This document shows, in pieces, positions 1 to 30,700 of a stretch of 64,000 bases of DNA. How positions within the stretch are numbered: the first letter of the stretch is position 1; each line of letters starts with the position of its first letter. The translations under genes and the position numbers were made by a program. The DNA comes from Gnetum montanum. Lineage: Eukaryota > Plantae > Gnetophyta. The stretch lies in the NCBI GenBank assembly GCA_015680685.1, contig MNCI01001967.1:147354-211353 (forward strand). Direction: 5' to 3'. The notes under the pieces are model-generated. The model was not told the origin of the DNA and did no database searches. It worked only from the letters and a program-made list of their open reading frames with translations.

Positions 1-3000
1 GTAGCTTTCATATGTTTCCAGATTGCACAAAGTAATGGTCTATTAGCTTAGTAGCATCCTGCCACAAAGGTAGTAGAGAAAAATTGGGAACTTGCCCACT
101 ACGAGTCTTGGGAACGGGCCCATTAAAGAAACCCTTGGAGTCTTGTAGGCCTATGCTAGTAGGGGGCAATTTCCACTAGCTAAGATAGAAGAATCACCTA
201 GCCATCCCTTGCAACCATGCCCCATAGCACCTGGTTACCATGATATGCCTCACACACTAGCTTGAAAGGAGGTGTTACACCCATTGCAATGGTCGCCTCT
301 TGCCACAACTAGAAACCAAGGGCAGCAACCTGGGTGGGAGGAGGGAGTAGCTTTGATTGAAAGATCAATGTGTTGCAAGCATGCAACAAACACCAAAGGA
401 TCGTGGTTGCAAGATTGTTCCTGTCCAGCTGTATTGGTGCTTAGCACTAGATGTCAGCTGAGAAGCGGTGCTGGTAAACAAAGTGACACAACATTTTAGC
501 TTCAGACCTGCAGAGGGGACATGTGTCATTGATATTAATACCTTGTATCTTTAGCAAAATGCGCATGAGCAATGCGGCATGGGACATGAGCCAAAGGAAA
601 GATTTTGTTGTTTTTTTTTGGCAATTGCCCCACCCAAATTGTCTTCCATCCTGTTATAGTTGGGTATTTAGTTTTAACAATGTCGCGCGATTGTGCACCT
701 TGCATTCCCCATTGGGACACCACATGCACATGCCTACAGATATTACGGCAAACATGCAAGTTCCAAGTTCCTGTTGTCCATGTTTGGTGTTTGTTTTGCA
801 AGATAAGAATTCATTGAACTGAATTATCAGTCTCTTGTATTAGCTGGTTAGTGAGGTTCTAGTATCCCATTGTAATGGCATCATCAAATATGAGAATGCC
901 TAGACCCCCCATCGGCTTTGGCCTAGCCATAGTCTCTTGGTAGACAAGATGCATGCGCTCACCCCCTTATCCCCTGACCATATAAGATTTCATACTAGTT
1001 GGTCCACTTTGTGGATGATTTCTTTTAGGGATGAAGCAACAAAGTAGCAAATCTTGTGATGGCAGGTAACATAGAAGCCACAATGATAATTTTTTCTTTC
1101 CTAGTTAAGAAGCATGTGGTCCAGTGCCCAATCCTCTGTTGCAGTTTTTGGATTAATTTGAGCCATGACATCTTCCTGTTCGAAGCATACATTGGCATCC
1201 CTAAATAGGAGTCCTACACCATTCCCTAAAGAATACCAAGCTCTTGGTAGACCTGGCCCTTGATTCTACTATTTGCTTTAAAGAAGTGTATCATAGACAT
1301 CCCTTTGTTGAGTTCTAGCCCCACCTCTTTAACCATCCTGCACAATGTCCTATTCACGGCCCGAGCCTTGGGCACTGTAGCGTGAGTAACCATGATAGTA
1401 TCATCAACATAATGTTCTGTCAAATAGTTCACCCCAACAATTTCCAGCAGCCTCATCCTTTCCTTTTTACAATTTAGATTCATTGTGTCCATTGCTATAA
1501 GGAATAAGTATGGAGAGAAGGGGTTCCCTTGCCACAACCCTTTGGTAGGGAAGGAGAACCCGCAAAGTTTCCCATTAATATCAAAGGAGCATGCACCCGA
1601 AGCTTGTAAGTTAATGCATAAGTTTGCAAACTTCGAGTGAAGTCCCTTTTTTAGCATTATTTCCCCGAGGGCATTCTGGTGGACGGTATCATATACTTTC
1701 GTGCTATCACGTTTGATACACATACTTGGAAACTTAGCTTCCTGGATGGAGTGCATAATCTCCTGCAATGGGATGATCTGGACTTGAATAAATCTTTCTT
1801 TGATGAATCTAGCCTGCTAGGCATTCACCAGAGTTGGCATCAGTGGCTGCATTCATCAGACCAAAATTTTTCTCAAGATTCATAGAAGGCTATTGTAAAT
1901 CCCAATGGGCCTAAAATTGGATAGCTCAATATGGTTCGTGGTCTTTGGAATGAGCACGATTTTGGAACAATTGATCTTGCGTTGAACTTGCTGCCATTTA
2001 AGCATAAGGTTGAAGGCATCTAAAATATTCTTCCTGATTATGTCATCATATTCCTTGAAAAATTCGATGGGCCATCCATCAGGCCCTAGAGCCTTTCCAG
2101 CTTCCAGTGAGGCTATGGCCCACTCGAATTCCCGTTGGGTAATAGCCTCAAGAAGCTTTTGGTTCTCCTCCATCCCAACCACCAGTTGGATCTAAGTTGA
2201 CATCCGGGGGCTTTCTCTCCTGCTCTAGATGCCCACACAATACTTGTGCATTGCTTGGGCAATGTCATTGGTCTCATGGATGATGTTACCCTTGTGAATT
2301 AGGTGATGCTTTTGTTGCAACAAAGAAAAACCGGGTGTTTCTGTCACCATCCTTCAGCCAATGAACTCTTGAACATTGCTTACAATACTACTTCTCTTTA
2401 GTTGACAACTCCTAGAGTTCATCTAACAACTCTTGTTCTACTTCTTCCAAGGACTCATCCAACTTTTGTCCAGCCTGGATTTCAATCAACTTTTTCTTTA
2501 GCTTTGTTTTGATCACCTAGAAGAAATATTTCTTGGCCATCTTCCTAGTGTGAGTTTCTATCTTAAGCTTGGTGAGGCCATGCTTCAGAAAGTCTTGGGG
2601 ATCCATCGAAGAAGGGTAGTTAGCCTAGATGCCAACAACTAGAGGCTACATCCAGGGTTTAGACAATAAAGTCCTCTCAAAATGAAAAGGTGATCAAAGG
2701 CCTATCGCTCCTAGTAGTGAACTTGGACCTTGTAGCTCACTAGGATGTCAATGCTAACCCAGACTTGGTCAATCTTGGACATGATCCTATCCTACCCCTG
2801 CTTCCTGTTACTCCTCGTGAAAAGGCATCCCTTCATATCCATGTCCAATAGGTCATGAGAGTAGAGGAAATGTAGGAAGTGTTGACTTCCTGGTAGGACC
2901 TTAGTACCTCCTTCAATATTCTCCCAATAATGGAGCCTTTGATTGAAATCTCCAATCAGAATCCACTATCACCAATCAAGAATCAATTGCGTGATCCTCA

Positions 3001-3335
3001 TTAGCTCATGTAGTTGTTCCCCCCCAGTCCTACGGTCTGTAGACATTGGTAAGTGACAACCCAATTGATGGCAGAAATATGATCATGCTCCAGGTTGAGG
3101 ACTCAACTAGATCAAAAGGCAAATGTGATAGAGTTGCAAGTCTACCTGCCCATCCCTGATAGGCAACAAAGTGGGCATGCCAACCAGCCCAACACAACAT
3201 GTGACATTCTCTGTGCTGTAGTTTGGTTTCTTGCAAACACACCACATTGCAATCTTCCCCATGCACAATTTTTTTCATAGGACTTTTTTTATAAGGTGTA
3301 CTCTAATCCCTACAATTCCAAAAAAGAATTTTCAT
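1..3335 (-). pseudogene. L1 ORF2 (endonuclease, RT, zf-RVT, extended C-terminus), disrupted
   Basis: ATG at 3335 (MKIL.WN-type start); track ORFs 3030-3278, 1880-2182, 1226-1768; zf-RVT about 480-680; coding-like sequence continues to base 1 (PLWQDATKLIDHYFVQSGNI*KL). Confidence 0.9.
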
Positions 3336-3339
3336 GGTC

Positions 3340-5231
3340 TACTCGTAGACCGTTTTTTGTAAATCCCTTTTAGGGTTGTCTGTGAGCCTAAATCAATCTT
3401 CAACTATCTTCTTGCTTTAGGACATTGGCTTGAGCGGTCGACTAGCCTTTCTTGGCTTGGTTACCACAAGGAAACCCTAGTTATCTGCCACTACGGCTGC
3501 TCCTAAAGCCTCCTTCATTCTGGGCATCCCTGAACCTCTTACCACTAATACCCAGAGCTCCACCCTTTTTTCATATGGAATTCGAGCTTCAAGGTTTGGA
3601 GTATGACCCTCCCGATTTGGAGGCAAACATAGGCCCTTATGACCCACTAGAGTTGAAGCGGGGGAAGATAGCCCCATTGACTGGACCACAATAGCAGGTA
3701 GGACTTGCCCCTACTGGCCCACAATCATCCAACCATCCAGTCTTTTGCTTTGGCTTAGGTTTATTAGGGCAAATCCTACATTCCTTAGTTCTATGATTGT
3801 TTTTTCCGCAAATGGAGCAAGAAGCCACAATTGTAGTTTGTCCAATTATGGGCTTACCCACAGGCACCTTCTTGTACTCAACTTGAACATTTCCTCCCCT
3901 ATTGGCAGATTGAGGATAATCTCCCAAGCTAGGTCTTCGGTGGATAGTGACCTCCAAACACAAAACTTGGCATATTCCACTTTTTCCTTCGACTTGATGA
4001 ATTTATTGAAGCTAATAAACTCTTCAAAGAAGCCTACGAGGGTTTTAAAAAACTCTGTGATACACAGCTCCCATTGTATGCCCGAGAGAGAAGATCTGGA
4101 TCTTTTTGCGCCTTCAAATGCCAATGCGTGAAAGCTAAGCCCTTGGCTCTGAAGAAACTGGGCTGCCTAGCAGCACCTTGTCCTGATCTTTTGATGACTA
4201 GAACACAAACAACAACCATTCGCCCACTAGGGTACAAATCTGCACATTACTAATCCCCCTAGATGCCACCACCCACTTCTTAATCAACTCCATCATAGGT
4301 CATGCCCCTTATGAAACGAACTTCCCCACTAAGCTCAACTCTAGAGTTCATAGTCCCTTAGTTAGTGGTCGTCGATCTTGCAACCTCATGGTTCCTTCAC
4401 TATGGGAACAAGCGTCTATGCCCCCATCACTAGAGTCCCAACCTGACATTTCCTCCTTGTGACCACTAGATCCCACGATTGCCCTTGCCTTTTCCAGCCT
4501 CCCATCATCCTTTGGAGGCCACGTAGCTTGTCCTTGCAAGTGTAAGAGCAAACAACGCGGAGGCAAGTGGGAGTGCAAAGCAACATGGAGGTGAGGGGGG
4601 AAACTTGATGAAATGAACTTCCCCACTAGGCTCAACTCTAGAGTTTATAGTCCCTTAGTGGTCGCTGATCTTGCAACCTCATGGTTCCTTCAATACAGGA
4701 ACAAGCATCTATGCCCCCATCACTAGAGTCCCAACTTGACATTTCCTCCTTGTGACCACCAGATCCCACGGCTGGCCCCGCCTTTTCCAGCCTCCCATCA
4801 TCCTTTGGAGGCCATGTAGCTTGTCCTTGCGAGTGCAAGAGCAAACAATGCGGAGGCAAGCAGGAGTGCAGAGCAACATGGAGGCGAGGGGGGAAACTTG
4901 ATGAAACGAACTTCTCCACTAGGCTCAACTCTAGAGTTCATAGTCCCTTAGTTAGTGGTCGCCGATCTTGCAACCTCATGGTTCCTTCACTATGGGAACA
5001 AGCGTCTATGCCCTGATCACTAGAGTCCCAGCTTGACATTTCCTCCTTGTGACCACCAGATCCCACGGCTGGCCCTGCCTTTTCTAGCCTCCCATCATCC
5101 TTTGGAGGCCACGTAGCTTGTCCTTGCGAGTCTCTGTTTCCCCCCTTGCCTCCATGTTGCTCTGCACTCCTGCTTGCCTCCACGTTGTTTGTTCTTGCAC
5201 TCGGGTTTGTAGCTCTTGAGTTCCCACCCAT
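3340..5231 (-). pseudogene. L1 ORF1 with internally triplicated N-terminal segment
   Basis: ATG at 5231, DUF4283-like segment about 4130-4345, CCHC knuckle in ORF 3637-3963. Confidence 0.8.
4311..5202. repeat. Three ~295-bp direct repeats plus a ~67-bp inverted segment
   Basis: Units start at 4311, 4608 and 4901 (ATGAAAYGAACTTCYCCACT); 5136-5202 is the reverse complement of about 4830-4897. Confidence 0.95.
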
Positions 5232-5239
5232 CGCAACTC

Positions 5240-7860
5240 CAATTGCCTTTAATATTTACTTCGCTGTTTAGTTCTTAATCATTGTTATCTTTTACGTAGC
5301 ATTGTTCCATCAGTATCATGATCTTCAATTATTATAGTTGTATGTCAGTTTATTCCCCTTGAAAATCTATGTTGCATTATACTTTTAATCATTGTTACTA
5401 TAGTGTCTCTGATTGGCTACCAACTTAAATGTTCTCATGCTTCTCAAATTGTTTATCTCATTCTTCTCAATGGTTGATTTGTCAAATCTTAAAGGTGCAT
5501 CACCAAAGTTATATTTTTTACAAAAATTTTTGAATGTCATATTGAACTAGTTTCGCACATTGTTTATTGTATAAAAAAAGCTATACCATGATGGCAATTT
5601 GAATAACAAAATAAAAATCTTCCTTAACACCAACATTACTCTTTAATTGTTGATCACTCTTATTCATTAGGTAGTGTCGCTATGCCACCATCTTCATCTT
5701 CATAATTATACTTGCATGTCAATTTGTTCTTCTTGAAAATGTATGTTGCATTGCACTTTTAATCATTGCTCCTACAATGTTGAGCATTTTCTCCACACTT
5801 TAATGTTAAATCCTATTAAATTGATCATCACATTCTTTTCAATGATTGCTTCATCAATTCTTAAAGGTGCATCATCAATGTTACATTTTTAACAATTCTT
5901 TCATCTTCGATTTTCAAATATCATATTAAACTAACTTTACACTTATTTTCATTGAATCCAACAACCACGCAAAAGTAGTACTTCAAATAACAATTTCACA
6001 ATGCCCCTTAACACCTACTTTACTTTTTAGATGGTGATCACAATTGTCTATTACATAGCATCGTTGCACCATAAACTTGATTTCATTGATTATAGTTGAA
6101 CATCGCTTTGTTTCTCTGAAAAATTAATGTTAAACTGTATTTCTAATTGTTTCTCCTACCATCTTACTATGCCTTGCATTTGCTTAACACTTCAAACTTC
6201 AATGTTCTCACTCTAGAAATGTTCATCTTGTTACTCTCAATGGTTGATTTTCCCATTCTTAAAGTTGCATCACCAATGTTACATTTTTTAAAGTTGATTT
6301 GAATGCTCTTACTCTACAATTGCTCATCACATTCTTCTCAATGGTTGATTTGCCAATTCTTAAAGTTGCATCAACAATGTTTAATTTTTTATGCTTGACT
6401 TCAATATTCTCACTCCTCTAAATTGCTCATCACATTCTTCTCAATGGTCAATTCACCAAAACTTAAAGTTCCATCACAAATGTGATATTTCTTATGGTTG
6501 TCTTTTATCTTCACTCAAGTTTTCAAATATCATAAAGGAAATGTTGCAGTCTCCGTTAACACCTCATTTTTTACTTGTTGATTTTTCTTATCTTTTAGAT
6601 ACCATCATTGCACAAACATCTTTATCTTAAAGTATCTCCTATTTGCTATAGACATCAATGTTCTCACACTCCTCAATATTGTTCATCACTTTTTTGTTCA
6701 CAGTTGATTTGCCAATTCTTAAATTGCATCACCAATTCAACATTTTTTGCAATTGTCTATTGTGTTAAATTTTCCAATGTCATCATATTGAACTAGTTTG
6801 ACACCTAATTTTTTGGATGTAAAAACCTATACCATCATTGCACAAACTTCTTGATTTTCAATTGTGATAATTACATGTTAATTTGTTTCTCCTATAATAT
6901 CTTCCATTTACAGTATCTCCCATTTGCTACAGACATTAATGTTCTTACACTTCTCAAATTGTTTATCATTTTTTGTCAATAGTTGATTTGCCAATTCTTA
7001 AAGTTGCATCACCAATGCTACATTTTTTGCAATTGCCCCTTGTGTTAAATTTTCAAAAGTCGTATTGAACAAGTTTCACACCTAATTTATTGGATCCAAA
7101 AACTTAGGCCATGATGGTAATTCGGATAACAAAGTAACAATCTCCCTTAACACCAACATAGCTTTTTTGTTATTGATCACTTTTATCTATTAGGTAGCAT
7201 TGCTACACTGCCAACTCAATCTCAATGCTTATAGTTGCATGCCAAGTTGTTTAGTTTGCATTGTACTTTTAATCATTGCTCTTACAGTGCCTTGCATTTC
7301 CTTCAAACCTCAATGTTCCCTCCTATAGAATTCATCCTCACATTCTTCTCAATAGTTAATTCATTAATTCTTAAAGTTGCATCAACAATGTTGCATTGTA
7401 GAAATTGTCACTTGTTCTACATTTTCAAATGTCACGCTTGATTAGTTGATCAAAAAAGTTAGACTATGATGGTGATTTGGATAACAAAGTAACAATCTCC
7501 TTTAACACCAAAATTACTTTTTGGTTGTTGTTCACTCATGTCCATTAGGTAATGCTGCCACACTACCATATTCATCTTAATAATTATAGTTGTGTGTCAA
7601 TTTGTTCTTCACGAAAATTTATGTTGCATTCTACTTTTAATAATTACTCCTGCAATGTCTTACATTTCCTCCAAACCTCAATGTTCACTCCTATTAAGTT
7701 GTTCATCATGTTTTTCTTAATGGTTGATTCATCAATTCTTAGAGTTGCATCATCAATGTTCTAATTTTTATGGTCTTTTCTTCTCTTAACCAAACTTTTA
7801 AAATGCCATGTTAAATTGGTTTCATACTTAATTTCGTTAAATCTCCCTTAACTCCTACTT
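5240..7860. repeat. Degenerate AT-rich tandem repeat, ~370-bp basic unit
   Basis: Motif TTCTTAAAGTTGCATCACCAATG recurs near 5487, 5858, 6257, 6357, 6462, 6717, 6995, 7368 and 7737. Confidence 0.85.
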
Positions 7861-7869
7861 AATTCTGGT

Positions 7870-10336: not shown

Positions 10337-12262
10337 CACCTTGTTTGTTGGGAAAAGGTGGCATGACCTAAGTGCTCTGGGGGCTTGGGGTGATGGGGTT
10401 TTAGGACATTGTTCTCATGGGATACTAATCCCTCATCAACCACTTCCTGAGTCGGGAGACACCAAGTAATGATTCTTAGAAGAAAATATGCTCAAGTAAT
10501 GATTCTTAGAAGAAAATATGCTCAATGTGAGGCCAATATTCAAGACTCCCACTTGTGGTGAAATATTTGCAAGTTTGCCCAACAGCTATCTTAGATGGGA
10601 CTTTTGGGAGCCTGACTATGGGAAACCATGAAGCATAAATACCCTGCAGCTTGGGGTGGAATAATGTTTGGAAAGGCCCCCTACTCAAGAAACTTAAATG
10701 CTTCTTATGGCTCATCAACTTGGGGGTGCTGCTAGTACGAGCACTAATCCAGGAGCGTGGCCTCCATATAAACAACATGTGCCCCCTCTACTACAGCGAC
10801 ATTGAAATTATGCATCATTTTGTGTTTTTGTGCCCATTCTCCAAAGTGGTTTGGGCCACCTCGGGGATCACACAATAGCTGTGTGAGGACTCTCCTACTG
10901 GAGTAGTGGTATGGATGCTCTAGCGGGCAAGGAACGAACACATCTTTCAAGCTGCTCCGCTACCATTGCCTATACATATTGTTGTTTGTGCCTCTAGGCT
11001 TTGGAACAAGGCCACGACTACAATGGGGGTTACCACCAACCTTTGAGCTTGACTGTCAAATCTTCAGGGCCAACTAGTTGTTGCGGGATCAGTGGTGTGA
11101 ATCACCAACCTTTGAGCTCGACTGTCAAATCTTCAGGGCCAACTAGTTGTTGCAGGATCAGTGGTGTGAATGGGATGGGAAGACCTTCCTTTCCTTCTCA
11201 CCAATGACCTAGATCTCACAGGTGCATCCTTCTTCTCATGTTGGAGGGGGGATGCCACTACCTTCTAGAGTGTTTGCATTTGGCTTATCGAAACAACCAT
11301 TGCAGATTATCTTGGTCTTCCGGTTGCAGGGGAGATAGTGTTGCCCTCGGGGCAAGGGCTCCAAGATGCTGAAAGCTTCTTCCTTGGACTACTCCGAAAG
11401 ACTAGGAGTGCCTAGGTCCCCAATTCAGGCTTGGCCCCACTTTGGTAGGATGTTGTAGAGCTTGTGGAACATTTCTTCGTCTCGTCGGGGAACATTTGGA
11501 AGCTCTAGGGGATCCATTTTTCCTTTCATTTGCTGCATGTAGCTAGGCTGACCACCTAATCTTCCGAAGTTTTTTTGGGCCTCCCTACACTGGGGAAGAA
11601 GGGGATGCCACTTTGGCTTGATCTTGGCCTTAATGGAAAGTGGTGCGACTTGTGGAACTGTTGTTGGTAAAGCCCATTTCTGTCACCATGACATATACTA
11701 GACATAGGCCATCACAGGAGGGAGAGAGTCCTCCTTTGCATGGGCCATTCTAGAGGAAAGAGAGGTGTTGGCAGGGGTGGGGGAAGATTCGGATTGGCAG
11801 GGCTCTGCCACGAGTTAGCACCCATCATTGCAGGAGCAAATCCAAGCTACCGAAGACCATATTCGTAGGGAGTTGCATTGTAAGATTGAAGTTGACCTCC
11901 ATAGGGCCATTGCTAAGGTCAGGGTAGAGGAACAAGTGTGATGGGAAGCTGAGTTCTAGTGAAGTGAAGAAGAGGCCAAGGTCAAGTGATAGGAGGAAGA
12001 ACAATAGCTCAAAGAGTTGGTGGTGGAAGAGCAGTGCCAATGGGAGCTACAAGATGCTACGTTTAGAAGTGTCATGGAGGATTAGCTCCGAGAGCAAATT
12101 AGGGAGAAGTTGTGCTGGAAGGAGTAGGAGCAACTCGAAAGAGAAGAAGAGTAGCATGTTAGGGCCTTTTTGAAGGAGCGACAAATTAAAAGAAACCAAG
12201 AGGCTATGCATGAGCCCAGTGATGGTTTTGCATGGGAAGATGCCCATCTGTGGTTATGGGAG
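10337..12262 (+). mobile_element. L1 fragment, copy B: late ORF2, zf-RVT, extension, coiled coil, start of J-domain
   Basis: HLVCWEKVA*PKCSGGLG at the start; zf-RVT ORF 10651-10878; WML*RARNEHIF; HFFVSSGNIWKL; E/Q/R-rich run; WFCMGRCPSVVMG at about 12223-12261. Interrupts sequence that is contiguous at about 19165. Confidence 0.88.
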
Positions 12263-12685
12263 GGGGTTAGGATATTGAAGTAAAAATAAATAAACAATAT
12301 TCACTTGCATAAAAGGAAAATCTAACTATGAAAAAATGTACAAAACATTCATGTAATGAAAGACTTACTCCAAGGAGACCTCCAGCCTTCCAAGATGCAA
12401 TATTCCCATTGTATAAATGAAAGAAGTAACTAGGCATTTCAAGTGTATTTTACATGTCATATAACAACCAACTCACATCATAAAATGGAGAGAGTTACAA
12501 TAGTTAGGTTTACTTCTTATGGAAAATTCAACTAAAGTTTTTGTCTCATTTTAGGCATCTTAAGTTTGAGCAAACAAATCTTGAAAATAGGGTCTGAATT
12601 TTTGGTAAGTTTGGGACTGAAATGAATCTAAAATTATAATCATCAACACAGTTCGTGGGAGTTGGGATTTAACAATTTGTTTTTT

Positions 12686-12806
12686 TTCTTCTTCTTCTTC
12701 TTCTTCTCAGCTTAGAGTATTTTTCAGCTTTTGCAATATCTGTAGTTGGGAGATGGATCTTGGAAAGTAAATTACTAGCCATTTAATAATAATAATAATA
12801 ATAATA
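12686..12806. repeat. (TTC)n and (AAT)n microsatellites
   Basis: Directly visible at about 12686-12706 and 12785-12807. Confidence 0.9.
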
Positions 12807-18267: not shown

Positions 18268-18272
18268 CCACC

Positions 18273-19900
18273 TTAAAAACTAGCTTTGTTCAAGGTGATT
18301 GCTAACACTGTGTATCACTTGCTAAGCTAGAAAACATCAAACATTTGTGTAACTCACTTGTTTCAAGTTTTATTTTACAAGTAGCAGCAACGGATGTGGT
18401 TGGATGTACTCCTAGTCCTCCACTATATATCCACCATACGAGATCATTTAATCTATAATAGGCTACAAACAATGGTTGGGAATGAAAAATGTATAGGTTT
18501 CAACAACTTTGCCCTTGCAATGTGGCATTGCATTCCCACATTGAGGGCCATCCAACTTGAAGAATTTGGTCACTATTTGGCCATGAGTTGGGTTATCTTC
18601 GAGTTCTAAACTACACAAACAAGGCTTGGCTCAACCATCGTTTTTCGACTACACCTCAATATACCCTCAAGATAGGTGACAAGGGATCATACGTGAGGTG
18701 GTCACACACATATGATTGGTGCTTGCATAATTGAAAACCTTCAGGTGTTGTGCAGCTCAACCCCCTTGGGTCCAATGGCTCAGGATATTAAGTCGAAGTA
18801 AGCATGTGTACAGGTAGGATTGGATAGTGGTGCTTATCTCCACATCTAGGGTAGGATGTGTGCAAAATAAATAAACAATGCAACCCATCCATTCAAGATA
18901 CGGGGATGAATATATTATTGTTAGAATGATCAGTTAATGATCCTTAAAAATACTACATGCTTCACACAATGCACACCAATCAAATGCATCATCCACCTAA
19001 TTACAAACTGTGCCTTTAGCTGAATTGCTTATCCTAGGATCCAAAGGGCTTCTAATCATAATTCATGCGGGTTCATTTTACGTAATGCAAATAAACATTC
19101 ATAAATACACATATATTTTCTTTCTTTTCTTTGCACAAATAAAAGGATATAATTACTAATGAATAAATGGGGTTATCATATTGAAGTAAAAATAAATAAA
19201 CAATATGGACATTGCACATGCGGGTTCATTTTACGTAATGCAAATAAACATTCATAAATACACATATATTTTCTTTCTTTTCTTTGCACAAATAAAAGGA
19301 TATAATTACTAATGAATAAATGGGGTTATCATATTGAAGTAAAAATAAATAAACAATATGGACATTGCATGAAAGGAAAATCTAATTATCACTTGATAAA
19401 ATAATTTGAAATCTATGTCAGCTTTGGAAACATTAGATTGGTTTGTCTTTCACATAAGTTAAGGATTTGGACTCACTTAGCAACTTACATAGTCAGGTTG
19501 AATTACTTGGAGCTTTGCATTGAGATCCTCTATCAGCTTCAAAGGTTCTTTTCCGTTGGCATCCAATTTATGATCGTCATTGTAAACCTTTTGTTTTCTT
19601 TCTTCAACGTTAGGCATCCCAAACTTAACAAACAAAATCTGAAAGTAGGGCTTGAATTTTTGGCAAACAACTCTGATTTTAGCAGAAAATGAGGGTCTAT
19701 GGCAAAATCTGAAATTCTAGTTATCAATAGAAGTGGAATTTCACAGTGTTCTCTTTCAGCCTAAGGCAACTTCAGTCTTTGCAATTTCTCTAAGTGTGAA
19801 GGCTGAAACGTGTAGAGTTTAGGCACAACATTTTCTAACAAACTTTGCTTTTGTTTCACATGTGTACACTCCCTACCAAGACCTAATAGTTTTGAAAGAC
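18273..19900 (-). mobile_element. LTR/leader remnant of the Tekay-like element
   Basis: Colinear homology with 9550-10335 and 12262-12610; upstream of gag; no clear PBS seen. Confidence 0.65.
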
Positions 19901-19939
19901 TTCATAACTTGACAGTGATACTAAGTACTGTGTATGCTT

Positions 19940-21335
19940 GAGCTGGGGGAGGAGAACCCCTATAGACACAAGAGTAACAAAAACATAATCCGAAACCTCC
20001 CAATAGGCAAAATTTGCATTAAAGAGGGTGTTGGACCTCCTAAACAATATAGGCCCATCACTGGCCCCTTTTGAGCACTACATTCAAAACCATACACCAG
20101 AAACTGTACTTCCCTTATTGGGAACCTTGCTTGGTCATGAGAAAACAAGTCATCCAGTAGACTATTGTATCTTGGTGCAAGGGTAGATTGCCCTTGCTTG
20201 GCTATGTATTCCATCAAGGACTACCCAAAAACGTTGTATCTTGGTGCAAGGGTAGATTGCCCTTGCTTGGCTATGTATTCCATCAAGGACTACCCAAAAA
20301 CGTTTCGTAGTGATGAAAGCGATAGCCTCCTATAATTCCTTGTACTTTGCTTTGATTGTTTGTTGGGCATCTACCATGGTAGCCTTCTCCAAGTGGAATT
20401 TAGCTGAGGTCTTCTTGATGTATCATTGCATGTTAGCCCATGAGACGTTCTAGTTCATGCCCATAACCTCATAAGGGCACCGGCCCATGCAAAACCAATG
20501 TCTAGTGTTGGCCTCGTGTGTAGCCAGTTGACCCTGCTGGATCTACTCCTCCTCTAGGAGGGCCCAAATGCGCTGCTCTTCCTCCTCTTCTCAGAAGACC
20601 TATTTTTTTTCTTTCTGGTGCAAATCCTTCTTGATCTATGCTCTTAGCTCATCCTCTAGGGTGCTTCTAAACATAGCCTCCTGCAACTCTATTTGGCACC
20701 GTTCCTCCAAGGCCACTTCTCTCAGTTACTGCTTAGCTTCCTGGTATCTATGCCTAGTCTCCTCATGTATTCTCATCTCCTCCTCCCAATGTGCTAGCTT
20801 CTGGGCCCTCGCATTTGCAATGGCCAGAAGTAGATCAGCCTCAAATTGGCTTTGAAGCTCTCGATGCACCTGTTTCTTTGCAAACTAGATTTGCTCATGG
20901 AGAGGTAGTCGATGCATGGTGGAACCTTGCCAGTCAGGATCCTCCTTGCCCTCCACCTGCATCTCCCTTTCTGAATGCTCCTCCAGCACAACCTTGGTCG
21001 AGGAGGAGGATTCACCCTTGAAAGATGGTCAGTGGTGGATATACACCCTCCTAACCTGGAGGAGTTTGGCCAGTAGTGGTTGTTGTGGTTGTGCCACATT
21101 CCTGAGTGCCAAAATCAAGCAAGAATGCCACCCTCTCCTCTCTCACCAGAGTGAAGCTAGAAAATATTTCGGAAGGTTAGGCAATTGGTCAAACTACATG
21201 TGCCAAAGGAAGGCAAAGTGTGCACCCTGGAGTTTCCACATATTTCCAGATTGCACAAAGAAACATTCAATTAGCTTTGTAGCATCTTGTGAAAGGGAGG
21301 GAGGGATGACTTTGGGACCTGCCGGTTGCCGATCA
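19940..21335 (-). mobile_element. L1 3' fragment, copy C: conserved block, coiled coil, J-domain, 3' UTR
   Basis: Homologous to bases 1-70 (QDATKLIECFFVQSGNMWKL) and to 11440-12260; encodes CPYEVMGMN*NVSWANMQ*YIKKTSAKFHLEK..KYKEL*EAIAFI. Confidence 0.85.
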
Positions 21336-24300
21336 TAATTATGCTCTTGTGATGCTTTTGCTAACACTATGTATGTAGTATGGTCTCTTCTGATCATCAA
21401 GTTGTGTTAGTACTGCACCAAGGGCATAGTTGGAAGCATTAGTCATGATATGAAAAGGTCTTGATCAATCTAGAGCTTTGAATGCCTTTTCACATGACTT
21501 AATCCCCTTGAAGGGTGCATCCTTCTTTGTGACTTCTACAAGCAATTTAGCTATCTTTGAAAAGTTTTCAATAAATCTCCTATAGTATCCTATATGGCCT
21601 AAAAAGGATCTTACATCTTTCATTGTCTATGGCCATTGAGTGATGTTTTGGATGACTTTGATCTTTTCAGGACCTACCTCAATACCCTTATGGGAGATTT
21701 TGTCTCCCAACACTATGCCTTCTTGGACCATAAGATGGCTCTTTTGCCATTTGAGCTTGTTTGAAATCTAGCCCGTATGTGGAAAAATCATCCATAAAAA
21801 CTTCAACACCATTACCTATTTGCTTCTAGAAGATACTTAAGACCAGTCTCTAGAAGGTTGCTAGTGTGTTGCAAAGATCAAAAGACATCTATTTGTAAGC
21901 AAATGTTCCCCATGGATTGGTGAACAGCCTTTTCTTGGTCTCCAGGTGCAATATGGATTTGATTGTATCCATTGTACCCATCCAAAAAAACTGTAATACT
22001 CATGGCTTAAAATTGTGTCCAAGACTTGATTAACAAATGGGAAGGGCAAATGATCCTTGAATGTAGTTGAGTTCAACATTCGAAAGTTGATGCAGATGTG
22101 CCATTTGCCTCCCTTCTTTGGAACCATCACCGAAGGATTGACCCATTCACTATCTGCAATGGGATAGATGAATCTTGCCTTTATTAACTTTTCCAATTCT
22201 TGCTTGACTACCTCCTTGAGTTTAGGATTAAGCCTTTGTTGAGCTTGGCATTTTGGTTTGACTGCAAGATCAGTGTAGATCCGGTGTTGACAAATTCGTG
22301 GATCAATTCCCGTGATCTCATCAAAAGACCATGCAAACGTTGTAGGCCATCTGTTGAGCACTTCAAGTTTTTTTTCTTTTTTTTTTCTTCTTTTTTGGCT
22401 CTTTGTCTAGGTCGACGTTGATAATCACCAGCTTCGTAGTATTTAGGAATGCATACACTAATGTTGTCGATAGGGCTTTCAATTCTAGCGATTTTGGTTC
22501 CATTGTATCTAGGATCTCCAAGTATCCCCAGTTTGTGTCTTCTTCCTGATTGTTTTGAGGATAAGAGTGTCTTTTCCTTAGCTTTCCTTAGCTGTTCCAA
22601 CTTATCTATTTCTGCAAGGTAGGTAATAATAATTTGTTCCTCTGCTTCCATGTACTTGTCAAACTGAGTTTCTTCACTTGTAATCAACCACTAGGTGCCC
22701 TCTTGTTGGATGGTTGTTGCATACAGACAATTTTGCATACATCTTGTTTCAACACATCTATTGCATATTTTAGTCTCCTCTCTTTTGATAGCCCAAATTT
22801 TTTTCACGCAATTGCACCCGTTATCATTGTATGCGATACATGGAACTCTTTGTCTTTGTATGATTCCAACCTCATTTTCCTTGGAAATATTCAAGGACAA
22901 ATCACAGATTCCAAGCTTAGCATCCATGGTGCTAAGCCAAGCTCTTCCCATGATAATCGGGAATTCTCCCTTGTTTTTCCCCACGTGAATGACTAGAAAA
23001 TTAGCAGGGTAAGACCAGCCACTAATCGTAGTAATGACATCATCCACTTGTCCAAGTGGAACTATAATTGACTAGTCTGCAAGCTCTAAGTGAATGTTAC
23101 TTTTCTTTAGTGGTGGTAAGTTCCAAGTATGATACATGTCTTGAGATATCAGGTTCACTCCAAACCTAGAATCCAATAGAGCCTTGCATGGTTTTTGTCC
23201 TAATATTTGGAGATAAACCAAGTGATTTCCTAGATCAATTCTCTTTTGTGGAAGAGCCCCTACCTTTATCCAATGAGTTATGGTCTGAGTGAGCATGATA
23301 GTTGTGACATTTGAACTTGGTGAAGTCGAAAGCTTGTTGCGTTGAGAAGGACTTGATGTAGATGGGGTGGAATTAGATGTGTTCCTCATCCCATGAGTCT
23401 TTTCAGGACTCATTCTGAAGAATGGTCATTTCCTAGGTTGAAACTCATAGGTGACCATCTCCTCATGCATATTAACTGCCTTTAAAGCATTCTGCTGGGG
23501 TTGTGATGGCAATTCCCCCTGCATAATAGGAGGTGGCATTGGTGGCAAGGGATTTAGGTGTTGGGTAGAATGACCAATTGTCTGCAAATGTACATATGAG
23601 TTGGGATTAGTCCTCAGTGACATTGATCTGTGGTATTTTAGTGGATAATACTATGGAGTCTGGACAATTGTGTTTGCTGGTGAGATTGGATGTTGAACAT
23701 AGTATCCATAAGGATCAAGTCGTTGATATTGGTGGTGGCATGGTCCATGTCTACAGTTGCTACCACTACTGCTAATATTGCTCTTACGGTTGAGGGTAGG
23801 CTCCGCTCGGGTAATAGGTTGGCTGGAAATGTTGCCTAATATTACCTTGAGGATAAGGAAGTCTTCTAGGTTATTGCTTTTTGACGAAGCTTGGATTGAG
23901 TCTGTATACTCTAGATTCTTGCAAGTGGGCCATAAGAGGACAACATTTCGTAGGATGGTCATACTGGCACACCTTGCCTCCTTCCTCTGAACTAGAGTCA
24001 GTGTACCCTTCAACGCTAGCAACTTTTCTTTTTATCTTGTAATTGTCTCATCCATAATTTCTTTTCTTATTCTTTTCCTTGTCATTGTTGAGTGCTTGTT
24101 TAGTCTTTTCCTCCATAATTTTTAGGACTATAGCAAATTTTTAGGACCTTAGCTGCTATATCATTCACTGATTTTTGAGTAGGTAGAGTCTTTTGCTGAA
24201 TGACCTGATCCAAGGTTTCCCTCTTGTGTATCGTAGACTCGTGCATCTCTCTTTCGGATTGATGAATCTCTATTGTACTCTTCAATTGATTTCTTCTTTT

Positions 24301-26755
24301 GTAGCTCACCTTCCTCTCTTGCCACTTGCTCAATTAGTTTTTGAATGTGATGGGTAGTCATTTCTGATAATTTTCCTTGGGTGTAAACCCCAAAGGTCTC
24401 TCTAGTTTTGCTCTACAACTCATCTACAATATGCCTGAGTTGTTCCTTTGATGAAAATTCATGGCTTGGGCACCTATGTTATAGTGAATAGTATTTGCCC
24501 ATTACTGCATCAAGGGTCTAATGAGTCCCTTGCTTCCATCCTTGGATTTGTTTTCTTAAATTTGACACCCATGAATAGGTCTAATACTTGTTGTTAAAGA
24601 TTTCAAGCATGGTACTCCAACGTTTGAGGGATTTAGGTTCTAGTGACCTATACTAGCTTTTCGCTTCCTTCACAAGTGTTCTTAGAAACAGCTTCAACTT
24701 TTGCCAATCACTTTCTATGTTTTGGAGGGCATAGGCATCGTGGAAAGCTTGAAGGTGATGCTATGGATCATCATTGTAGCCACCTTCAAATTTTGACATA
24801 TTGTTCATGTCTAGCCATTTGATTCAGCTATCCCTCACGTGCCTAGTTGGTATGTAAACAACTTCTTGGATATTTATCATACTTTGGGTTGCTATAAGGG
24901 GTTCATCATCATGGTCAAGTTCGTATGCTCCGTTGTAGCGGTGACCCCTTCTGTGCTTATATCTTTCTTAATCCTCTCTTCACTCTCTTCGTCTCCTTCA
25001 TTCATGTTCTTCATCTTTTGTATCCGAGTGTCATGAATATTGGTCATGATGGACATGAGCCCTCCTTTCTTCCCTATCATAGTCTCGATACTTGTGTCAT
25101 CTCTTGTTAGAGTCCTCCAATGATCGTGATGAGGCCAATGAGGTAGCAGGAGAACGGTGCTGGCTTGTTCTCCTTTCATGACTCTTGTATGCTTCTCTGT
25201 AGGATTTAGCATGAACCGTTGACCATATACCTTGAGTCAATAGCCTACCCCTTAGGTGTCTCTACTAGAGTGGAATGAAGTTGGGCTTTGATAGGTTCCT
25301 CAAGTGTAATGATAGGTGTTTTTTAAGGCTCCTCATGGTTTTGGTGGAGTTGTTTTGAAATGAATGCATTAGCATCAAGCTCTTCCAAGACAACAAAAGT
25401 ATTGGTCTGCTTCCCTTTGTTGTGTACATGTTTGATTTCCATGGCAGCATCTCTCCTCATTTGCTCCTTCGTGGGTTCGTAGGGTCTTGTCATGTGCTAA
25501 GTCACATGATACCTCTCATGGATTTGGTCCAAATGCATTCCCCTTAGGCCAATTTGTAGCATGTTAAGTGTTGCATGTTCTAGGGGCTGGAGCATGTTGG
25601 CTTGCATGTCCCTCCACCTCATTTGATTGTCCTGATGAATGATGAAAGTGAAGTCTGGATAGTAAGGATCAATGTGAGCATAAGTGATTCTTGTCTGCAT
25701 TGGCATCTCCCATTAATCATTGTCACTGCTTCTTCTTGTTTCCTTGGTAGGTGATGGTTGATCTTTGTTTGAAGCCATATTATATTTTTAGACGTTATGT
25801 GTTAAGTGTGCTTTTCTTATGGTTATAAGGTTTGACTTTATGTTTCAGATACAACGAACTTTGGAAAATCAATTATTAAGCATATATTGACGTGTCCTTG
25901 GCAACAATGCCAATGATGAGCGGTGGAGTAATACAAGTGTTTACATGTAGCTTGGTCGAATTCCGTGGACAAGGCAATGTAGTTATGCTAATAATTGGTT
26001 TGAGTTCCTAACCATTGTCTTCCCACATGAGCTAGTAAAATCAATGCATATGGTTTAACTCACAATGAGGTGTATGATAACTGATGTTGCTTTGGCCATT
26101 TTACTCTTAGTAAACATCAGGTAAATAGAAGTGGTTTTTAAGTCTAAGTAAACAACAAATGAATCTAGTCTAGCCTAGGCAATGGACATCCGTTCTTGAT
26201 TCTCCGCACACATCTTGGACTTGTGTAATCGTTATTGGAATTACAAGTATTTCACTACCGGGTTATGAAACAATCACACTTAACACTCGGAATTAGTCGC
26301 ATCCATTCTGCTTAATAGTAATAGTAAAGTGCATAGAAAGTAAAAAGTAACCAAGGAAATAGTAAATGTTATACTAGGTCAAAATAGTAAACTTTATTCT
26401 AAGTAAGCAATAAAGAAATCTAAGTGATGCTACACTGATGCAAAGTAATCTCGATCTTTATTTCTGGTCTTGAAACGTGTCCAGGGTACATTCCACTCAA
26501 ATAAAGACTCCGTTCAATCACTTAACATCACACTGCAGGCATACACTCCTAAGTGAGGAGTGCTAAGTGCTAAAATTGAGAAAACTAACAGACAGAATTT
26601 CGCTAAGTTGGAATGAAAACTGTGTGTGGACTGTGCATCTAAGTGTCGTATTTATAGGTCTGCACGTGTCCACGATGTTGGGTATCCAACACTGTAGCTT
26701 GTGCCCCAATATCGTAGCTCCAATATCCTAGCCTTGCAAAAAATTCGATTTATCA
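21336..26755 (-). mobile_element. 3'-truncated Athila-type Ty3/gypsy element (5' LTR, PBS, gag, protease, RT, part of RNase H)
   Basis: LTR 25914-26755 (TGATGAG..TATCA on +); gag 23.4-25.7 kb; protease ALLDSRFGVNLIS; RT IYPIADSEWVNPSVMVPKKGG..KDHLPFPFVNQVLD. Confidence 0.9.
25895..25912 (-). promoter_or_regulatory. tRNA-Asp-type primer binding site (decayed)
   Basis: Minus strand TGGCATTGTTGCCAAGGA next to the LTR, versus Athila-type TGGCGCCGTTGCCGGGGA. Confidence 0.75.
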
Positions 26756-26936
26756 GTGCCCCTGTACATAATTTTTTAAGTTAATTTATCTTGATATTTT
26801 CTCAAAAATAAAAGAAAATAGTTGATTCATCAATTCTTAAAGTTGTATCGTCAATGTAACATTTTATTATTGCTGACTTCAATGTTCTCACTCTTCTAAA
26901 ATTCCTCGTTACATTCTTCTCAATGATCAATTTGTC

Positions 26937-27745
26937 CCACGGACATAATGCCCGGCAATGGCTGCGGTGGGTGCGCCCACGGACATAACGCCCGGCGGAC
27001 ATAACGCCCGGCGGTGGCTGCGAGAGGGGCAGTGCCCATACTTTGTTTTGGGCATTAGTTGCGAGTGCTCCTGGGCGGAGCTCAGACGCCACATCCGCCG
27101 GACCTCGGCGCGGTACCACCCTGATGCAGGGTGTTCACAGGAGGACAGGGGTCGGCGCGAGTCGCTTATGCAAGGCATCTAGCAGGCGGCTAACTTCGTG
27201 GATACGGAGGATCCTCGGAATACCCTCGATATCCTCCATGAGCTGGAGCGCCCAAACTGCGCTTGTAGGCGGCTTCCGACTCACCTGTAGGGGGTGGTCC
27301 CTGGNNNNNNNNNNNNNNNNNNNNNNNNNNNNNNNNNNNNNNNNNNNNNNNNNNNNNNNNNNNNNNNNNNNNNNNNNNNNNNNNNNNNNNNNNNNNNNNN
27401 NNNNNNNNNNNNNNNNNNNNNNNNNNNNNNNNNNNNNNNNNNNNNNNNNNNNNNNNNNNNNNNNNNNNNNNNNNNNNNNNNNNNNNNNNNNNNNNNNNNN
27501 NNNNNNNNNNNNNNNNCCCCCCCACGGCCGTTGTGTTGTTGGGGGGTCGCCCCCCAGGTGTTTAGGCTTCCCTCGGTTTTCTCGGTTCTGGCTGGCTGTG
27601 TGTCTGTCTCCTCTGCGTTTTCTGGGGCCCAGGGGCCCTCCCTGTGGGGTTTCTCCTGATGGCCCACCGCTTGTTATCGCTTGTAATCTTTGTAACATAA
27701 TTTTGCTCCTTTAATATAATCCCGACCTCTTTCTCAAAAAAAAAA
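26937..27745 (+). mobile_element. Young 5'-truncated non-LTR insertion, copy D, carrying a J-domain
   Basis: 15-bp TSD AATGATCAATTTGTC (26922-26936, 27744-27758); A10 tail 27736-27745 after TTTAATATAA; GC/CpG-rich; N-gap 27305-27516. Confidence 0.92.
27030..27290 (+). pseudogene. DnaJ/J-domain coding segment with one internal TAG
   Basis: QCPYFVLGISCECSWAELRRHIRRTSARYHPDAGCSQEDRGRRESLMQGI*QAANFVDTEDPRNTLDILHELERPNCACRRLPTHL*; HPD at 27117-27125; spacing fits the J-domain pattern Y.VLG..S..E.....A..YHPD....I..A.....R..D. Confidence 0.82.
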
Positions 27746-30700
27746 TGATCAATTTGTCAATTCTTAATGTTCCATCACCAATCTGAAATTTTTTATGGTT
27801 GTCTCTCATCTTTACACACATTATCAAATTTCATAAAGGAAATGTTACAATCTCTTTTAACACCTACTTCACTTTTTACTTGTTGATTGTTCTTATCTTT
27901 TAGTTTCCATCATTTCCCAAGCATATTTATTCTTCAATGTTTGTTTGGATAAAAGTTGCTCATATAAGATTGAAGGGCGCAACACAAAGTTGCATTCGAA
28001 AATCTCAAGCACTCCTAATGATCTGTCAGAAAAGTTCTAAATCTGTGTCTGAGGTGTTTCCTCGGTCAATGCAGGGGTCAGCTGACCCATTATCCCTGTG
28101 GAATCAAGGTATTTTGAATGCATCGCATTGCTACCGTAATGATGTGCAACTGTTGAATTTTCGGCCTCTTTCATCAGTGCATTTGCATTCTTCAAACTAT
28201 GCAGCAGGATCCCAGAATTGCTTATAACAAACAGATTCAGGTAACAACTCGAAAATGCATGTTTATATGAAATCATGATAATCTTTATTAACAACAATTT
28301 ACATGATCTTAATAACTAGAAAGGAGACGTGGCTAATCTTTCTTCACAACAATTTGAGATTATTGCTGATTACTTTTAATTCAAAATCGTTCTTCCTTTA
28401 GGATGACGGTAACTAGCAATTTTATATACTTTGTTAGTATGGCTATTACAATTGGTAGGTGCCTGCATGGCGCATGAACAGGATGAACATTGAGCCTCTG
28501 AGTGATGACTCTGTACACTTATATAATTTGTTAGCATTGTCTCTGTGGCTCTGAAGCTGGGTGCATAACTACCGGACTTTGTAACCAACCACCAGCTAAT
28601 TTGGGTGCAAGAAAGAAAAAGTCTGCACATGATAGCCTAGGTGAAATTTGCAGTAAAAATTCTTTTGAAAATAGATTAGCAAGGATAAAAGATAGTTTTG
28701 CTTGGTCCATCTTTTATAAATATGTTGAGTTTCAGTATTTTTACTACTGCTATTTTGGTATTATAAAAATTTGGTAACATAATACAGAGGCATGCTTTAC
28801 TCGGTTCATTGGTATATAGAATAAATGCAACAAGAAGAATCTAGAAAACTGTGAATACATACATAACATATTTTCCTGTGATTAAAACAAGATCACAAAG
28901 CATTTTTATTATTATTTATTTGTAACATGAAACTGTAGACTCTGAATATGCAATAAAAAACTAATGAAAATACAAGAAGCTAGTTTCCTCAATTGAATTG
29001 TTTGCATCGTTGTTTTATTGATTTCATTTCTCCCGTATAAAATGCCTTTATACATCCAAAATGAAGGGCATTTTGAGGTATACCGGAATCTTGTTTGTTT
29101 GGCAGTTATTTATTTATTTTTTTTTTCAAAAATCGTGAATGTGATATCGTATGCTGAAGTGAAATTTCTTGGATAAACCACATATTTCATTCTCATAACT
29201 ACACAAAATGTACATCATTAGATTGGAGCGTTCACAAATCTGACCACCTTTAGAAGAAGAAGAACCATCGCAGGGTAACTTAGCCCATGTGAACTGTTAT
29301 TTTATTAAAACATGTATTTATAAACTCTATTGAATCTTACATTACGACAAGGACGTGTCTGTGCTATCGCATGTTGTTTTACCTAAGGATTTTTTTCCTT
29401 TTTTCCTCTTTTTTCCCATGTTCTAACATGTGCCATGCATCCGTGCCAGGACTACTGACTTAGTTCAGTCATCTGGGCTCTCAAAATGGAAGGAAGAGAA
29501 AAGGTAGTGGCAGGATTTATTTTGTGGGCAATGCCCTTGCATTTTGCTCGTAAAAGAAATGTATTTGAAACCCAAAGATCGTGGTCTTGGTTTTGATGTA
29601 TAGCATTAGATAAATGCGATGAGTCCCAAGTAAGATGTCATCAATGAACAAGTGAAAGCGTCACAATAAATATTCATTTTACAGGTTAGCATATGACTGA
29701 CTGAGAAATCTTCAGTAACATCATTCGACTTTGACGTTCATGGATGCTGGATTCTTTTTACGTGATATGTTCCCAGTCAGTTTCTAGTGCTGATCTTTTG
29801 TAATTTTATCCTTTTGTTCAGCATGGGGTGACCGGAGAAGAATCTCAGGTTGTTGTTGTTCATTCTTTGGTTAGTTTGTTTTCTTGTTACTTCGGTATTT
29901 GCATTATTAACCAAGCAAATTGATGGCGATGCATCACGATGTTGATGTATTACACGTTAATGTTCATCCAGAGCTTTTTATTGGTATTCATTGAGCTTAG
30001 CCGTTCTTCACAACACAAAAAGCCAGATTGCGACACAGAATGGCCCTAGCGAAAGAAAAAACAAACGCTTCAAATTTCATTTTAATCTGAATAGGTGTCG
30101 CCAAACAGACCACAAAGGAATTTCTACCACAATCCTAACGGTGAACAATCCAGAAATGACAAAGATGCAAGTGTAAATATGAAAATGAGTTAAACATCAA
30201 TACTTTAAAACACAAGTAGTTACTTCAAAATAAACTCTTATGGAGTCCAATATCAAATCAAACAGAACCAATATCAGAATGTATGTAAAATATTACCATT
30301 TAGCAAATAAAGTGCAAAACCTAAGCCATAAGAAAAGCATACCAATTTGAGAGATTCTCCAATAATTAAAGGGGAAAAATAGTAGCTTAGAAACCTGAAT
30401 CTTTTTTTAATTTAGCTTACTATTGCTTACAAGAATTGAGCTTATAACTTTAAGCTTTCAAATCAAGTAATAATTTTACTTAGAAATTAAAGAGATAATG
30501 AAACATTAGCACTTTAGAATTGCTATTTTGTGCAATGTATCCTATTGACTATTTATTTAATTATTTTAGGTTCTCACAACCCCCTTCCCATCCCTTGGAT
30601 CAACAAGATTTTTTTCAAAATATATGTCATTTGTAAGACATGGTTTGATTTTACTAGGTAGCATTAGGTTATAAATTTAAAAAATAAAATTATGTAAAAG

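Follow-up and report, generated by a model that had tools for sequence, protein, structure and literature searches.

The window, that is the whole 64-kb stretch of DNA analysed, carries four copies (A to D) of a plant-type L1 retrotransposon, all of which are decayed and none of which is intact (Table 1). Copies A and C lie on the minus strand, B and D on the plus strand, and each peptide quoted for them in the initial annotation was located where that annotation had placed it. In copy A, Pfam detects RVT_1 with 42 bits (cut-off 29.6) followed by zf-RVT with 26 bits (cut-off 27.5), which is the order expected of a plant-type L1-clade LINE. The endonuclease of this decayed copy gives a weak match to Exo_endo_phos (16.3 bits against a cut-off of 24.5) and another to Exo_endo_phos_2. 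From the ORF1-EN-RT-zf-RVT arrangement previously read for A, the reverse transcriptase and the zinc finger are thus retained and the endonuclease is weakly matched, but ORF1 is without Pfam support, its CCHC-type knuckle having been spotted by eye only. The 3′ end of A lies beyond the left window edge, and its coil and J part are outside the view.

Copy B possesses the better preserved zf-RVT (50.4 bits, cut-off 27.5), and the linker between this finger and a conserved block contains an internal duplication of 69 bp. A motif around 11240–11330 may resemble the N-terminus of the Plant mobile domain (PF10536); in the zf-RVT-to-block stretch, the pieces 11170–11265 and 11269–11412, which are only 32 and 48 aa long, gave no Pfam match to this domain at E ≤ 10, and the Atlas no usable one. 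A J region had also been ascribed to B, of which just the first 13 residues are left, an unrelated repeat cutting the copy at 12262. Copy C runs in a single frame all the way from the block to the J-like domain; its ORF ends near 20165, past a 71-bp tandem duplication, and the 3′ UTR follows thereafter. Downstream of C, the host gypsy element showed no continuation into integrase, and the 3′ boundary and target-site duplication of C were looked for and not found. Neither a target-site duplication nor an A-tail was seen for A, B or C, which are old or cut. An Rfam search of the window gave no match.

Table 1. Features of the four L1 copies in the 64-kb window
Feature	Position	Strand	Remarks
Copy A	1–5231	−	decayed L1: EN, RT, zf-RVT, block
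A block	2–175	−	matches B (E 2e-15) and C
A zf-RVT	450–653	−	Pfam, E 1.5e-5
A RVT_1	1229–1816	−	Pfam, E 1e-10
A Exo_endo_phos_2	2795–2965	−	Pfam, E 0.12; copy decayed
A Exo_endo_phos	3033–3278	−	Pfam, weak, E 0.0086; copy decayed
Copy B	10337–12262	+	RT C-terminus, zf-RVT, linker, block, TAG, linker and charged helical region, J start
B zf-RVT	10639–10875	+	Pfam, E 3.7e-13
B block	11344–11539	+	followed by TAG 11540–11542
B linker and charged helical region	11552–12214	+	
B J start	12223–12261	+	
Copy C	19940–21335	−	5′-truncated; within Ty3/gypsy-like pol
C block	21197–21295	−	followed by TAG 21194–21196
C linker and charged helical region	20513–21193	−	
C J-like domain	20282–20473	−	HLE 20387–20395; TAG 20330–20332
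D target-site duplication, 5′ copy	26922–26936	+	exact 15-mer
Copy D	26937–27743	+	5′-truncated insertion; young (CpG o/e 0.80, GC 0.59)
D duplicated J start	26940–26966, 26996–27022	+	at 5′ junction; imperfect
D J-domain, helices I–IV	27039–27230	+	Pfam DnaJ, PDB matches, alignment to P0005, Atlas; HPD 27117–27125; TAG 27180–27182
D terminal TAG	27288–27290	+	
D assembly gap (N)	27305–27516		in 3′ UTR
D A-tail	from 27736	+	
D target-site duplication, 3′ copy	27744–27758	+	exact 15-mer

Copy D shows all the marks of LINE retroposition, namely an A-tail, a target-site duplication and 5′ truncation. Its 15-bp duplication occurs in the window at 26922 and 27744 only, and a tail of 10 A directly precedes the second copy, which bears out the 3′ UTR, poly(A) and target-site duplication first annotated here. 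An assembly gap in the 3′ UTR begins 14 nt past the terminal TAG; since it lies 3′ of the terminal stop, the reading of the J-domain is free of it. Both sides of the gap belong to one insertion because they are GC-rich (0.63 and 0.55, against 0.35–0.36 in the surroundings of D) and lie inside the same duplication. These features establish retroposition within the window and support the retroposition of a 5′-truncated copy whose 3′ end carried the J-domain. The CpG o/e of D, compared with 0.22–0.29 in A to C, further supports recent activity of a J-bearing subfamily.

The four fragments had been proposed to overlap into a single architecture. Comparison of their translations by blastp, with stops masked as X, confirmed this for each of the pairs A-B, B-C and C-D. 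A and B overlap in zf-RVT (E 1e-20) and in the block (E 2e-15). B and C share 247 aa at 39% identity (E 1e-37), comprising block, linker and charged helical region, and additionally 18 aa at the J start. C and D align without a gap over 91 aa across the J-like domain (E 2e-13), with a BLOSUM score of 128 compared to 23.8 ± 4.1 for shuffled sequences. Beyond the J consensus, this alignment contains a W ahead of the domain, CPY and SWA in both copies, residues that support a probable single origin of the C and D modules. The homology and the architecture are hereby established within the window. A nesting of unrelated elements was rejected as both the A-B and the B-C homology span the junctions.

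We further assessed the identity of the 3′ module. For the piece of D that precedes the in-frame TAG inside helix III, the top family is Pfam DnaJ (PF00226; E 2.3e-4, 21.6 bits, gathering cut-off 27.8, profile positions 2–36 of 63); the 35-aa piece 3′ of this TAG, on its own, had no Pfam match. When the stop is replaced by X, D aligns with the J-domain of P0005 over 64 residues ungapped (score 85, shuffles 23 ± 4, z 15), and the alignment is collinear over the full length, covering helices I–IV through to the R..YD-type motif. J-domains account for 37 of the 39 PDB matches to D, over the same residues, and DnaJ clusters for 24 of its 30 Atlas neighbours. A rough J-domain HMM run over the six frames of the 64 kb matched D and C and nowhere else. 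Single-sequence modelling of the 77-aa J piece, which ends at the stop, with AF2 gave a mean pLDDT of 43.4, too low for the model to be of use. Pfam found no match in the short pieces of C, whose J identity follows from its homology to D. These sequence comparisons support the 3′ module as a true J-domain homologue, and chance resemblance was rejected (z 25 for C-D and z 15 for D against the J-domain). The J-domains reported for C and D at the outset are hence upheld in family but not in integrity: while D has kept its HPD, C shows HLE at this position and three stops, the domain of D is interrupted by the TAG, and no intact copy exists.

The question arises whether the part of the element 3′ of the block was ever under selection or merely carried along. 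Differences between B and C over the 202 codons of the extension are distributed over the codon positions as 80/70/119, with a dN of 0.46 and a saturated dS. When read in either control frame, the third-position excess stays with these nucleotide positions, and zf-RVT (65/56/87) and the block (17/12/34) display an equal pattern. In C and D, the DNA is far diverged (46% nucleotide identity) and the protein pattern is kept, as had been observed before, and the BLOSUM score is frame-specific, being 125 in frame versus 16 and 1 out of frame. Past the helix III TAG, no third-position excess is apparent in C-D (19/15/16 over 31 codons). These two pairwise comparisons, B-C and C-D, constitute the evidence that establishes selection within the window, and judged by sequence the extension is coding and not a passive passenger. 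Together with the homology that runs unbroken from zf-RVT to the J-domain in independent, diverged copies, the third-position excess and the frame-specific conservation agree with the view that the domain is a conserved part of the element and not a one-off capture.

The stops nevertheless leave room for other readings. Through 3′ transduction or a template switch, an ancestral L1 could have acquired a segment of a host gene encoding a coiled-coil J-protein and kept it as 3′ sequence, untranslated and without a role. In-frame stops common to diverged copies, namely the TAG that follows the block immediately in B and C and the TAG at the same helix III codon in C and D, would fit such a capture, as would the absence of HPD from C and of an intact ORF from the window. 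As D is young and shares this codon with C, the J-domain may already have been truncated in the common ancestor. We nonetheless consider a passenger improbable: the coil displays the third-position excess, dN of 0.46 and saturated dS of zf-RVT, C-D conservation is frame-specific at 46% nucleotide identity, and neutral sequence equally diverged would hold no protein signal. The shared stops are compatible with parallel decay: of the 16 stops that are not shared, nine stand opposite CAA, CAG, CGA or TGG in the partner copy, and two of the three stops common to B and C differ in their stop codon. Shared stops were therefore rejected as proving that the module was already dead in an ancestor.

The stop after the block could instead be genuine. 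ORF2 would then end at this TAG, and linker, coil and J-domain would be expressed as an ORF3 or as a minor read-through product of ORF2, comparable to retroviral gag-pol. An identical ATG-TAG is found at this point in C and, after allowing for a 1-nt insertion, in B despite their strong divergence, and the frame 3′ of the TAG is that of ORF2, which read-through requires. Against this architecture, which we deem rather unlikely, speak the lack of a conserved ATG 3′ of the TAG, the restart of protein conservation four codons past it, and the fact that CAG-to-TAG decay in parallel yields the same picture. That D is no L1 copy, but derives as a processed pseudogene from the mRNA of a host or domesticated J-protein akin to the L1 module and was retroposed in trans, appears very improbable to us. 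It is true that no L1-specific sequence lies upstream of the J region of D, that DNA similarity of D to A–C is undetectable and that their composition is very unlike; yet the residues just 5′ of the J-domain are common to C in a gapless alignment, the ORF ends at similar spacing past the J-domain (about 17 codons in C and 20 in D), and LINE copies are normally 5′-truncated at any point.

In our view, the locus probably represents a plant-type L1 lineage with APE endonuclease, RT and zf-RVT that once gained a selected C-terminal coding extension ending in a J-domain. This extension would comprise a conserved linker (the block), approximately 200 charged helical residues that probably form a coiled coil, and the terminal J-domain about 20 codons ahead of the stop. 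It would have been acquired before the subfamilies seen here split, been maintained by purifying selection in active master elements and travel at the 3′ terminus of each copy that is retroposed; because of this position, a 5′-truncated copy like D comprises little beyond J-domain and 3′ UTR. Judging from its family, the J-domain would recruit Hsp70 in cis. With its HPD and basic helix II it would stimulate ATP hydrolysis by the host cytosolic Hsp70 and so would load the chaperone onto the protein to which it is tethered, which would aid the folding or holding of the very long nascent ORF2 protein or serve to remodel the L1 RNP, with the helical region, we suggest, as a spacer or oligomerisation arm. 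It is highly doubtful that the J-domain acts as a counter-defence module rather than as a folding aid. On its helical arm it would in that case compete for or redirect, at its own locus or RNP, the Hsp70 pool on which the J-domain protein SILENZIO draws in plant transposon silencing, and so blunt that silencing, with HLE copies as decoys that bind without activating; such a factor would be the first LINE anti-silencing factor made from a chaperone module.

Known accessory domains of LINEs are few, among them RNase H, an esterase, a PHD finger and one viral helicase, and each has indicated a retrotransposition step which the element cannot leave to the host. Should the J-domain be selected, chaperone recruitment would be such a step. 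Hsp70 and Hsp40 are known to accompany L1 ribonucleoproteins as well as hepadnaviral RT, in both cases as host factors only. A natural co-chaperone encoded by a transposable element would also offer an experimental handle in the form of an HPD point mutant.

That no L1 with a J-domain had been described agrees with our literature search, which covered neither Repbase nor Dfam and found no description of a LINE with a J-domain; a survey of L1s across 503 genomes never mentions DnaJ or the J-domain (PMC5203782). With the D piece as phmmer query, a set of 1.84 billion representatives yielded five weak matches to multi-J-domain or repetitive proteins, none of them RT-linked. Protein searches by word index, for which the D piece and the RT ORF of A served as queries, and two metagenome scans with the block piece of C and the D piece, gave no relative; these collections are apparently poor in plant transposon protein, which makes such blanks uninformative on novelty.

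Compared to known systems, the element shares with plant L1-clade LINEs the order of RVT_1 and zf-RVT, here behind a weakly matched endonuclease, as well as A-tail, target-site duplication and 5′ truncation. Smyshlyaev et al. in 2013 and Heitkam et al. in 2014 reportedly described plant L1s with a C-terminal RNase H. Such elements likewise place an accessory domain C-terminal to zf-RVT; where present, it is an archaeal-type RNase H, whereas linker, charged helical region and J-domain are found here. Polyomavirus T antigens exploit host Hsp70 for viral complexes through a J-domain with HPD and are likewise a case of a mobile or viral replicator with its own J-domain. This likeness is not sequence-based, and the polyomavirus domain is N-terminal in a helicase/regulator of a DNA virus, while the one described here is C-terminal in a retrotransposon and follows a long helical region. 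Insect R1 LINEs carry a viral SF1 helicase domain that is likewise an extra domain at the C-terminal end of ORF2, kept within the lineage (PMC4686597); domain, clade and host kingdom differ from the L1 considered here. SILENZIO, a plant J-domain protein that acts on transposons, works with Hsp70-family chaperones downstream of MBD5/MBD6. This Arabidopsis protein is recruited by MBD5/MBD6 and silences methylated transposons (PMC8616336). Likened by description only, it provides a mechanistic lead: SILENZIO is a host silencing factor and not transposon-encoded, whereas here the J-domain would be the element's own.

The window resembles repeat-rich plant DNA and contains CpG-depleted repeats along with zf-RVT L1s, Ty3/gypsy pol and gag sequences and an ORF resembling a Clp protease exon. 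None of its L1 copies is intact. Four of them, A to D, had been proposed in the initial annotation to overlap into one architecture with a J-domain downstream of the reverse transcriptase (RT), and all peptides quoted there were found in place. Copy A is a decayed L1, and RT, zf-RVT and retroposition marks together identify the type as plant L1. At the left edge copy A leaves the window inside the block, a conserved stretch C-terminal of zf-RVT, so that the part downstream of the block is out of view. The tandem units in its 5′ part, which lie upstream of a CCHC-knuckle region and gave no Pfam match, may represent an expanded ORF1 or 5′ region.

Coordinates of the L1 copies and other features in the window
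Feature	Positions	Strand	Evidence or description
Copy A	1-5231	-	
zf-RVT in copy A	450-653	-	Pfam E 1.5e-5
RVT_1 in copy A	1229-1816	-	Pfam E 1e-10
Exo_endo_phos in copy A	3033-3278	-	weak Pfam match
Tandem units in copy A	4351-5255	-	three ~300-bp units, near-identical encoded peptides
Copy B	10337-12262	+	
zf-RVT in copy B	10639-10875	+	clear, Pfam E 3.7e-13
Duplication in copy B	11034-11171		69 bp, two tandem units, 97% identical
Retrotrans_gag ORF	16654-17220	-	Pfam E 1e-7
Copy C	19940-21335	-	
Duplication in copy C	20165-20304		71 bp, two tandem units, 100% identical
Ty3/gypsy-like pol	~21340-25240	-	
Copy D	26937-27743	+	
Junction repeat in copy D	26940-27022		imperfect, 89% over 27 bp
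Stop-free piece of copy D	26949-27179	+	
J-like domain of copy D	27039-27230	+	
HPD of copy D	27117-27125	+	
Terminal TAG of copy D	27288-27290	+	
N run in copy D	27305-27516		
Row of long ORFs	31834-35610	-	around N gap 35109-35559
Retrotrans_gag ORF	33085-34014	-	Pfam E 8.5e-5
CLP_protease ORF, 162 aa	49684-50169	-	Pfam E 2e-29, only profile positions 2-75 of 182

Among the other elements, the Ty3/gypsy-like pol adjoins copy C, whose start at ~21340 directly follows an RNase H-like stretch and which hence seems to have inserted into, or to truncate, this pol; no integrase continuation of the gypsy-like element was seen in the window below 19940. The row of long ORFs suggests a fairly intact LTR retrotransposon, and the CLP_protease ORF resembles a single exon from a nuclear ClpP/ClpR gene or else a plastid DNA fragment residing in the nuclear genome.

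DNA divergence between the L1 copies is very large, and blastn yields short patches only. We translated all frames, masked stops as X and compared the copies by blastp. Copies A and B match in zf-RVT (E 1e-20) and the block (E 2e-15), B and C over the block, linker and charged helical region (247 aa, 39% identity, E 1e-37) and at the start of the J region (18 aa, 67% identity), and C and D over the J-like domain (91 aa ungapped, E 2e-13), with a BLOSUM score of 128 for the last pair versus 23.8 ± 4.1 in 2000 shuffles. Copy C stays in one frame throughout the stretch that begins with the block and finishes with the J-like domain, and the block of copy B is in frame with zf-RVT. These overlaps, together with the frame continuity in both copies, uphold the proposed single architecture and give a composite element whose reconstructed order is EN, RT, zf-RVT and ~220 aa ending in the block, followed by ~220 aa of linker and charged helical sequence, the J-domain, ~20 codons, a stop, a 3′ UTR and an A-tail. 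Pfam and Atlas (a protein-cluster collection) searches with pieces from the window lent no support to a plant mobile domain identity for the stretch after zf-RVT. Copies B and C each carry a short tandem duplication; that of C, situated at the extreme end of the J-domain ORF, appears recent since its units are identical. The sequence terminating copy B at 12262 (12263-12300) recurs at 19169-19206 and 19322-19359 (95% over 38 bp), two sites standing 150 bp apart near 19.2 kb, and probably represents the terminus of a different repeat family.

For the stop-free piece of copy D, DnaJ is the best Pfam family (E 2.3e-4, profile positions 2-36), its 21.6 bits lying below the cut-off of 27.8 bits in a piece that stops at an in-frame TAG mid-domain. 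J-domains account for 37 of the 39 PDB-sequence matches to this piece, all over the same residues, and DnaJ for 24 of the 30 nearest Atlas clusters. With X at the TAG, copy D aligns without gaps over 64 residues to the complete J-domain of P0005 (z 15); the alignment begins at Y.VLG, includes HPD and finishes at R..YD. In all six frames of the whole window, a rough J-domain HMM matches D and, weakly, C, and nothing else; an AF2 single-sequence model of the D piece (pLDDT 43) was too poor to use. At the sequence level, we take J-domain homology as claimed in the initial annotation to be established for D, and for C via its homology to D. The HPD motif is kept in D and reads HLE in C.

Copy D contains an assembly gap, an N run beginning 14 nt past its terminal TAG, and the J-like domain with its frame lies entirely to the left of it. 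A perfect 15-bp target-site duplication occurs in the 64 kb only at 26922 and 27744, a 10-A tail precedes its second copy, and the GC content is 0.63 and 0.55 on the two sides of the gap versus 0.35-0.36 in the flanks. Owing to the unique duplication, the shared high GC and the A-tail, both sides can be assigned to one insertion, and the gap has a bearing on the 3′ UTR length alone. At the 5′ junction, an imperfect repeat of the first J-region codons would fit slippage of the template or microhomology where the copy was truncated. The CpG observed/expected ratio is 0.80 in D versus 0.22-0.29 in A-C, which together with the perfect duplication shows recent activity of a J-bearing subfamily.

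Selection was assessed in two pairwise comparisons, B-C and C-D. In 202 aligned codons from the linker and helical region, the B-C differences number 80 at first, 70 at second and 119 at third positions (dN 0.46, dS saturated), and in the two other frames of their DNA the excess remains on the same nucleotide positions. The A-B comparison gives a matching pattern in zf-RVT (65/56/87) and the block (17/12/34). The J-domains of C and D share only 46% DNA identity, and their aligned translations score 125 in frame versus 16 and 1 when read in the two alternative frames (dN 0.77, dS saturated). The third-position excess and the frame-specific conservation show that the extension was translated and selected in the master elements during most of the period since the copies diverged, which bears out the earlier view of it as a conserved part of the element. 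Residues outside the J consensus that are common to C and D point to a single acquisition that predates the divergence of the subfamilies.

An ATG-TAG directly after the block is common to B and C, its TAG lying at 11540 in B and 21196 in C. C and D carry a TAG at the same helix-III codon, at 20332 in C and 27180 in D, 3′ of which a third-position excess is not visible in the C-D comparison over only 31 codons. These shared stops could be ancestral, in which case the block would close ORF2, anything further being made by read-through or as a separate product, and the J-domain would be truncated. Parallel decay is also a real possibility: opposite nine of the 16 unshared B-C stops the other copy has CAA, CAG, CGA or TGG, two of the three shared B-C stops differ in the stop codon, and if stops fall on these four codons only, shared stops are expected in a number of about the observed order. 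Silenced plant repeats usually decay through C-to-T changes in methylated CG and CHG contexts. D looks young, making a hit after its insertion less likely.

J-domains dock on Hsp70 with their HPD and helix II, upon which ATP is hydrolyzed and Hsp70 is clamped on a nearby client. Homology, architecture, retroposition and selection are documented in the L1 copies, and by analogy with what J-domains do, the L1 J-domain may act on Hsp70 as well. The helical arm would link it to the C-terminal end of the very long ORF2 protein, where it would load Hsp70 in cis, and Hsp70 could then help to fold or stabilize the ORF2 protein or remodel the RNP. Less likely than this folding or RNP role, the J-domain might interfere with the J-protein-dependent silencing of methylated transposons in plants (SILENZIO; PMC8616336).

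Other domains have been acquired by LINE clades beyond plant L1s (PMC4686597). In full-text literature searches, we found no paper describing a LINE or non-LTR element with a DnaJ or J-domain, and an L1 survey of 503 genomes never mentions either (PMC5203782), in agreement with the initial statement that no described L1 of this kind was known. Relatives of the window's L1/J sequences were not found in external sequence collections. What plant L1s are known to carry as C-terminal additions is RNase H domains, whereas the L1 analyzed here carries a linker, a charged helical region and a J-domain.
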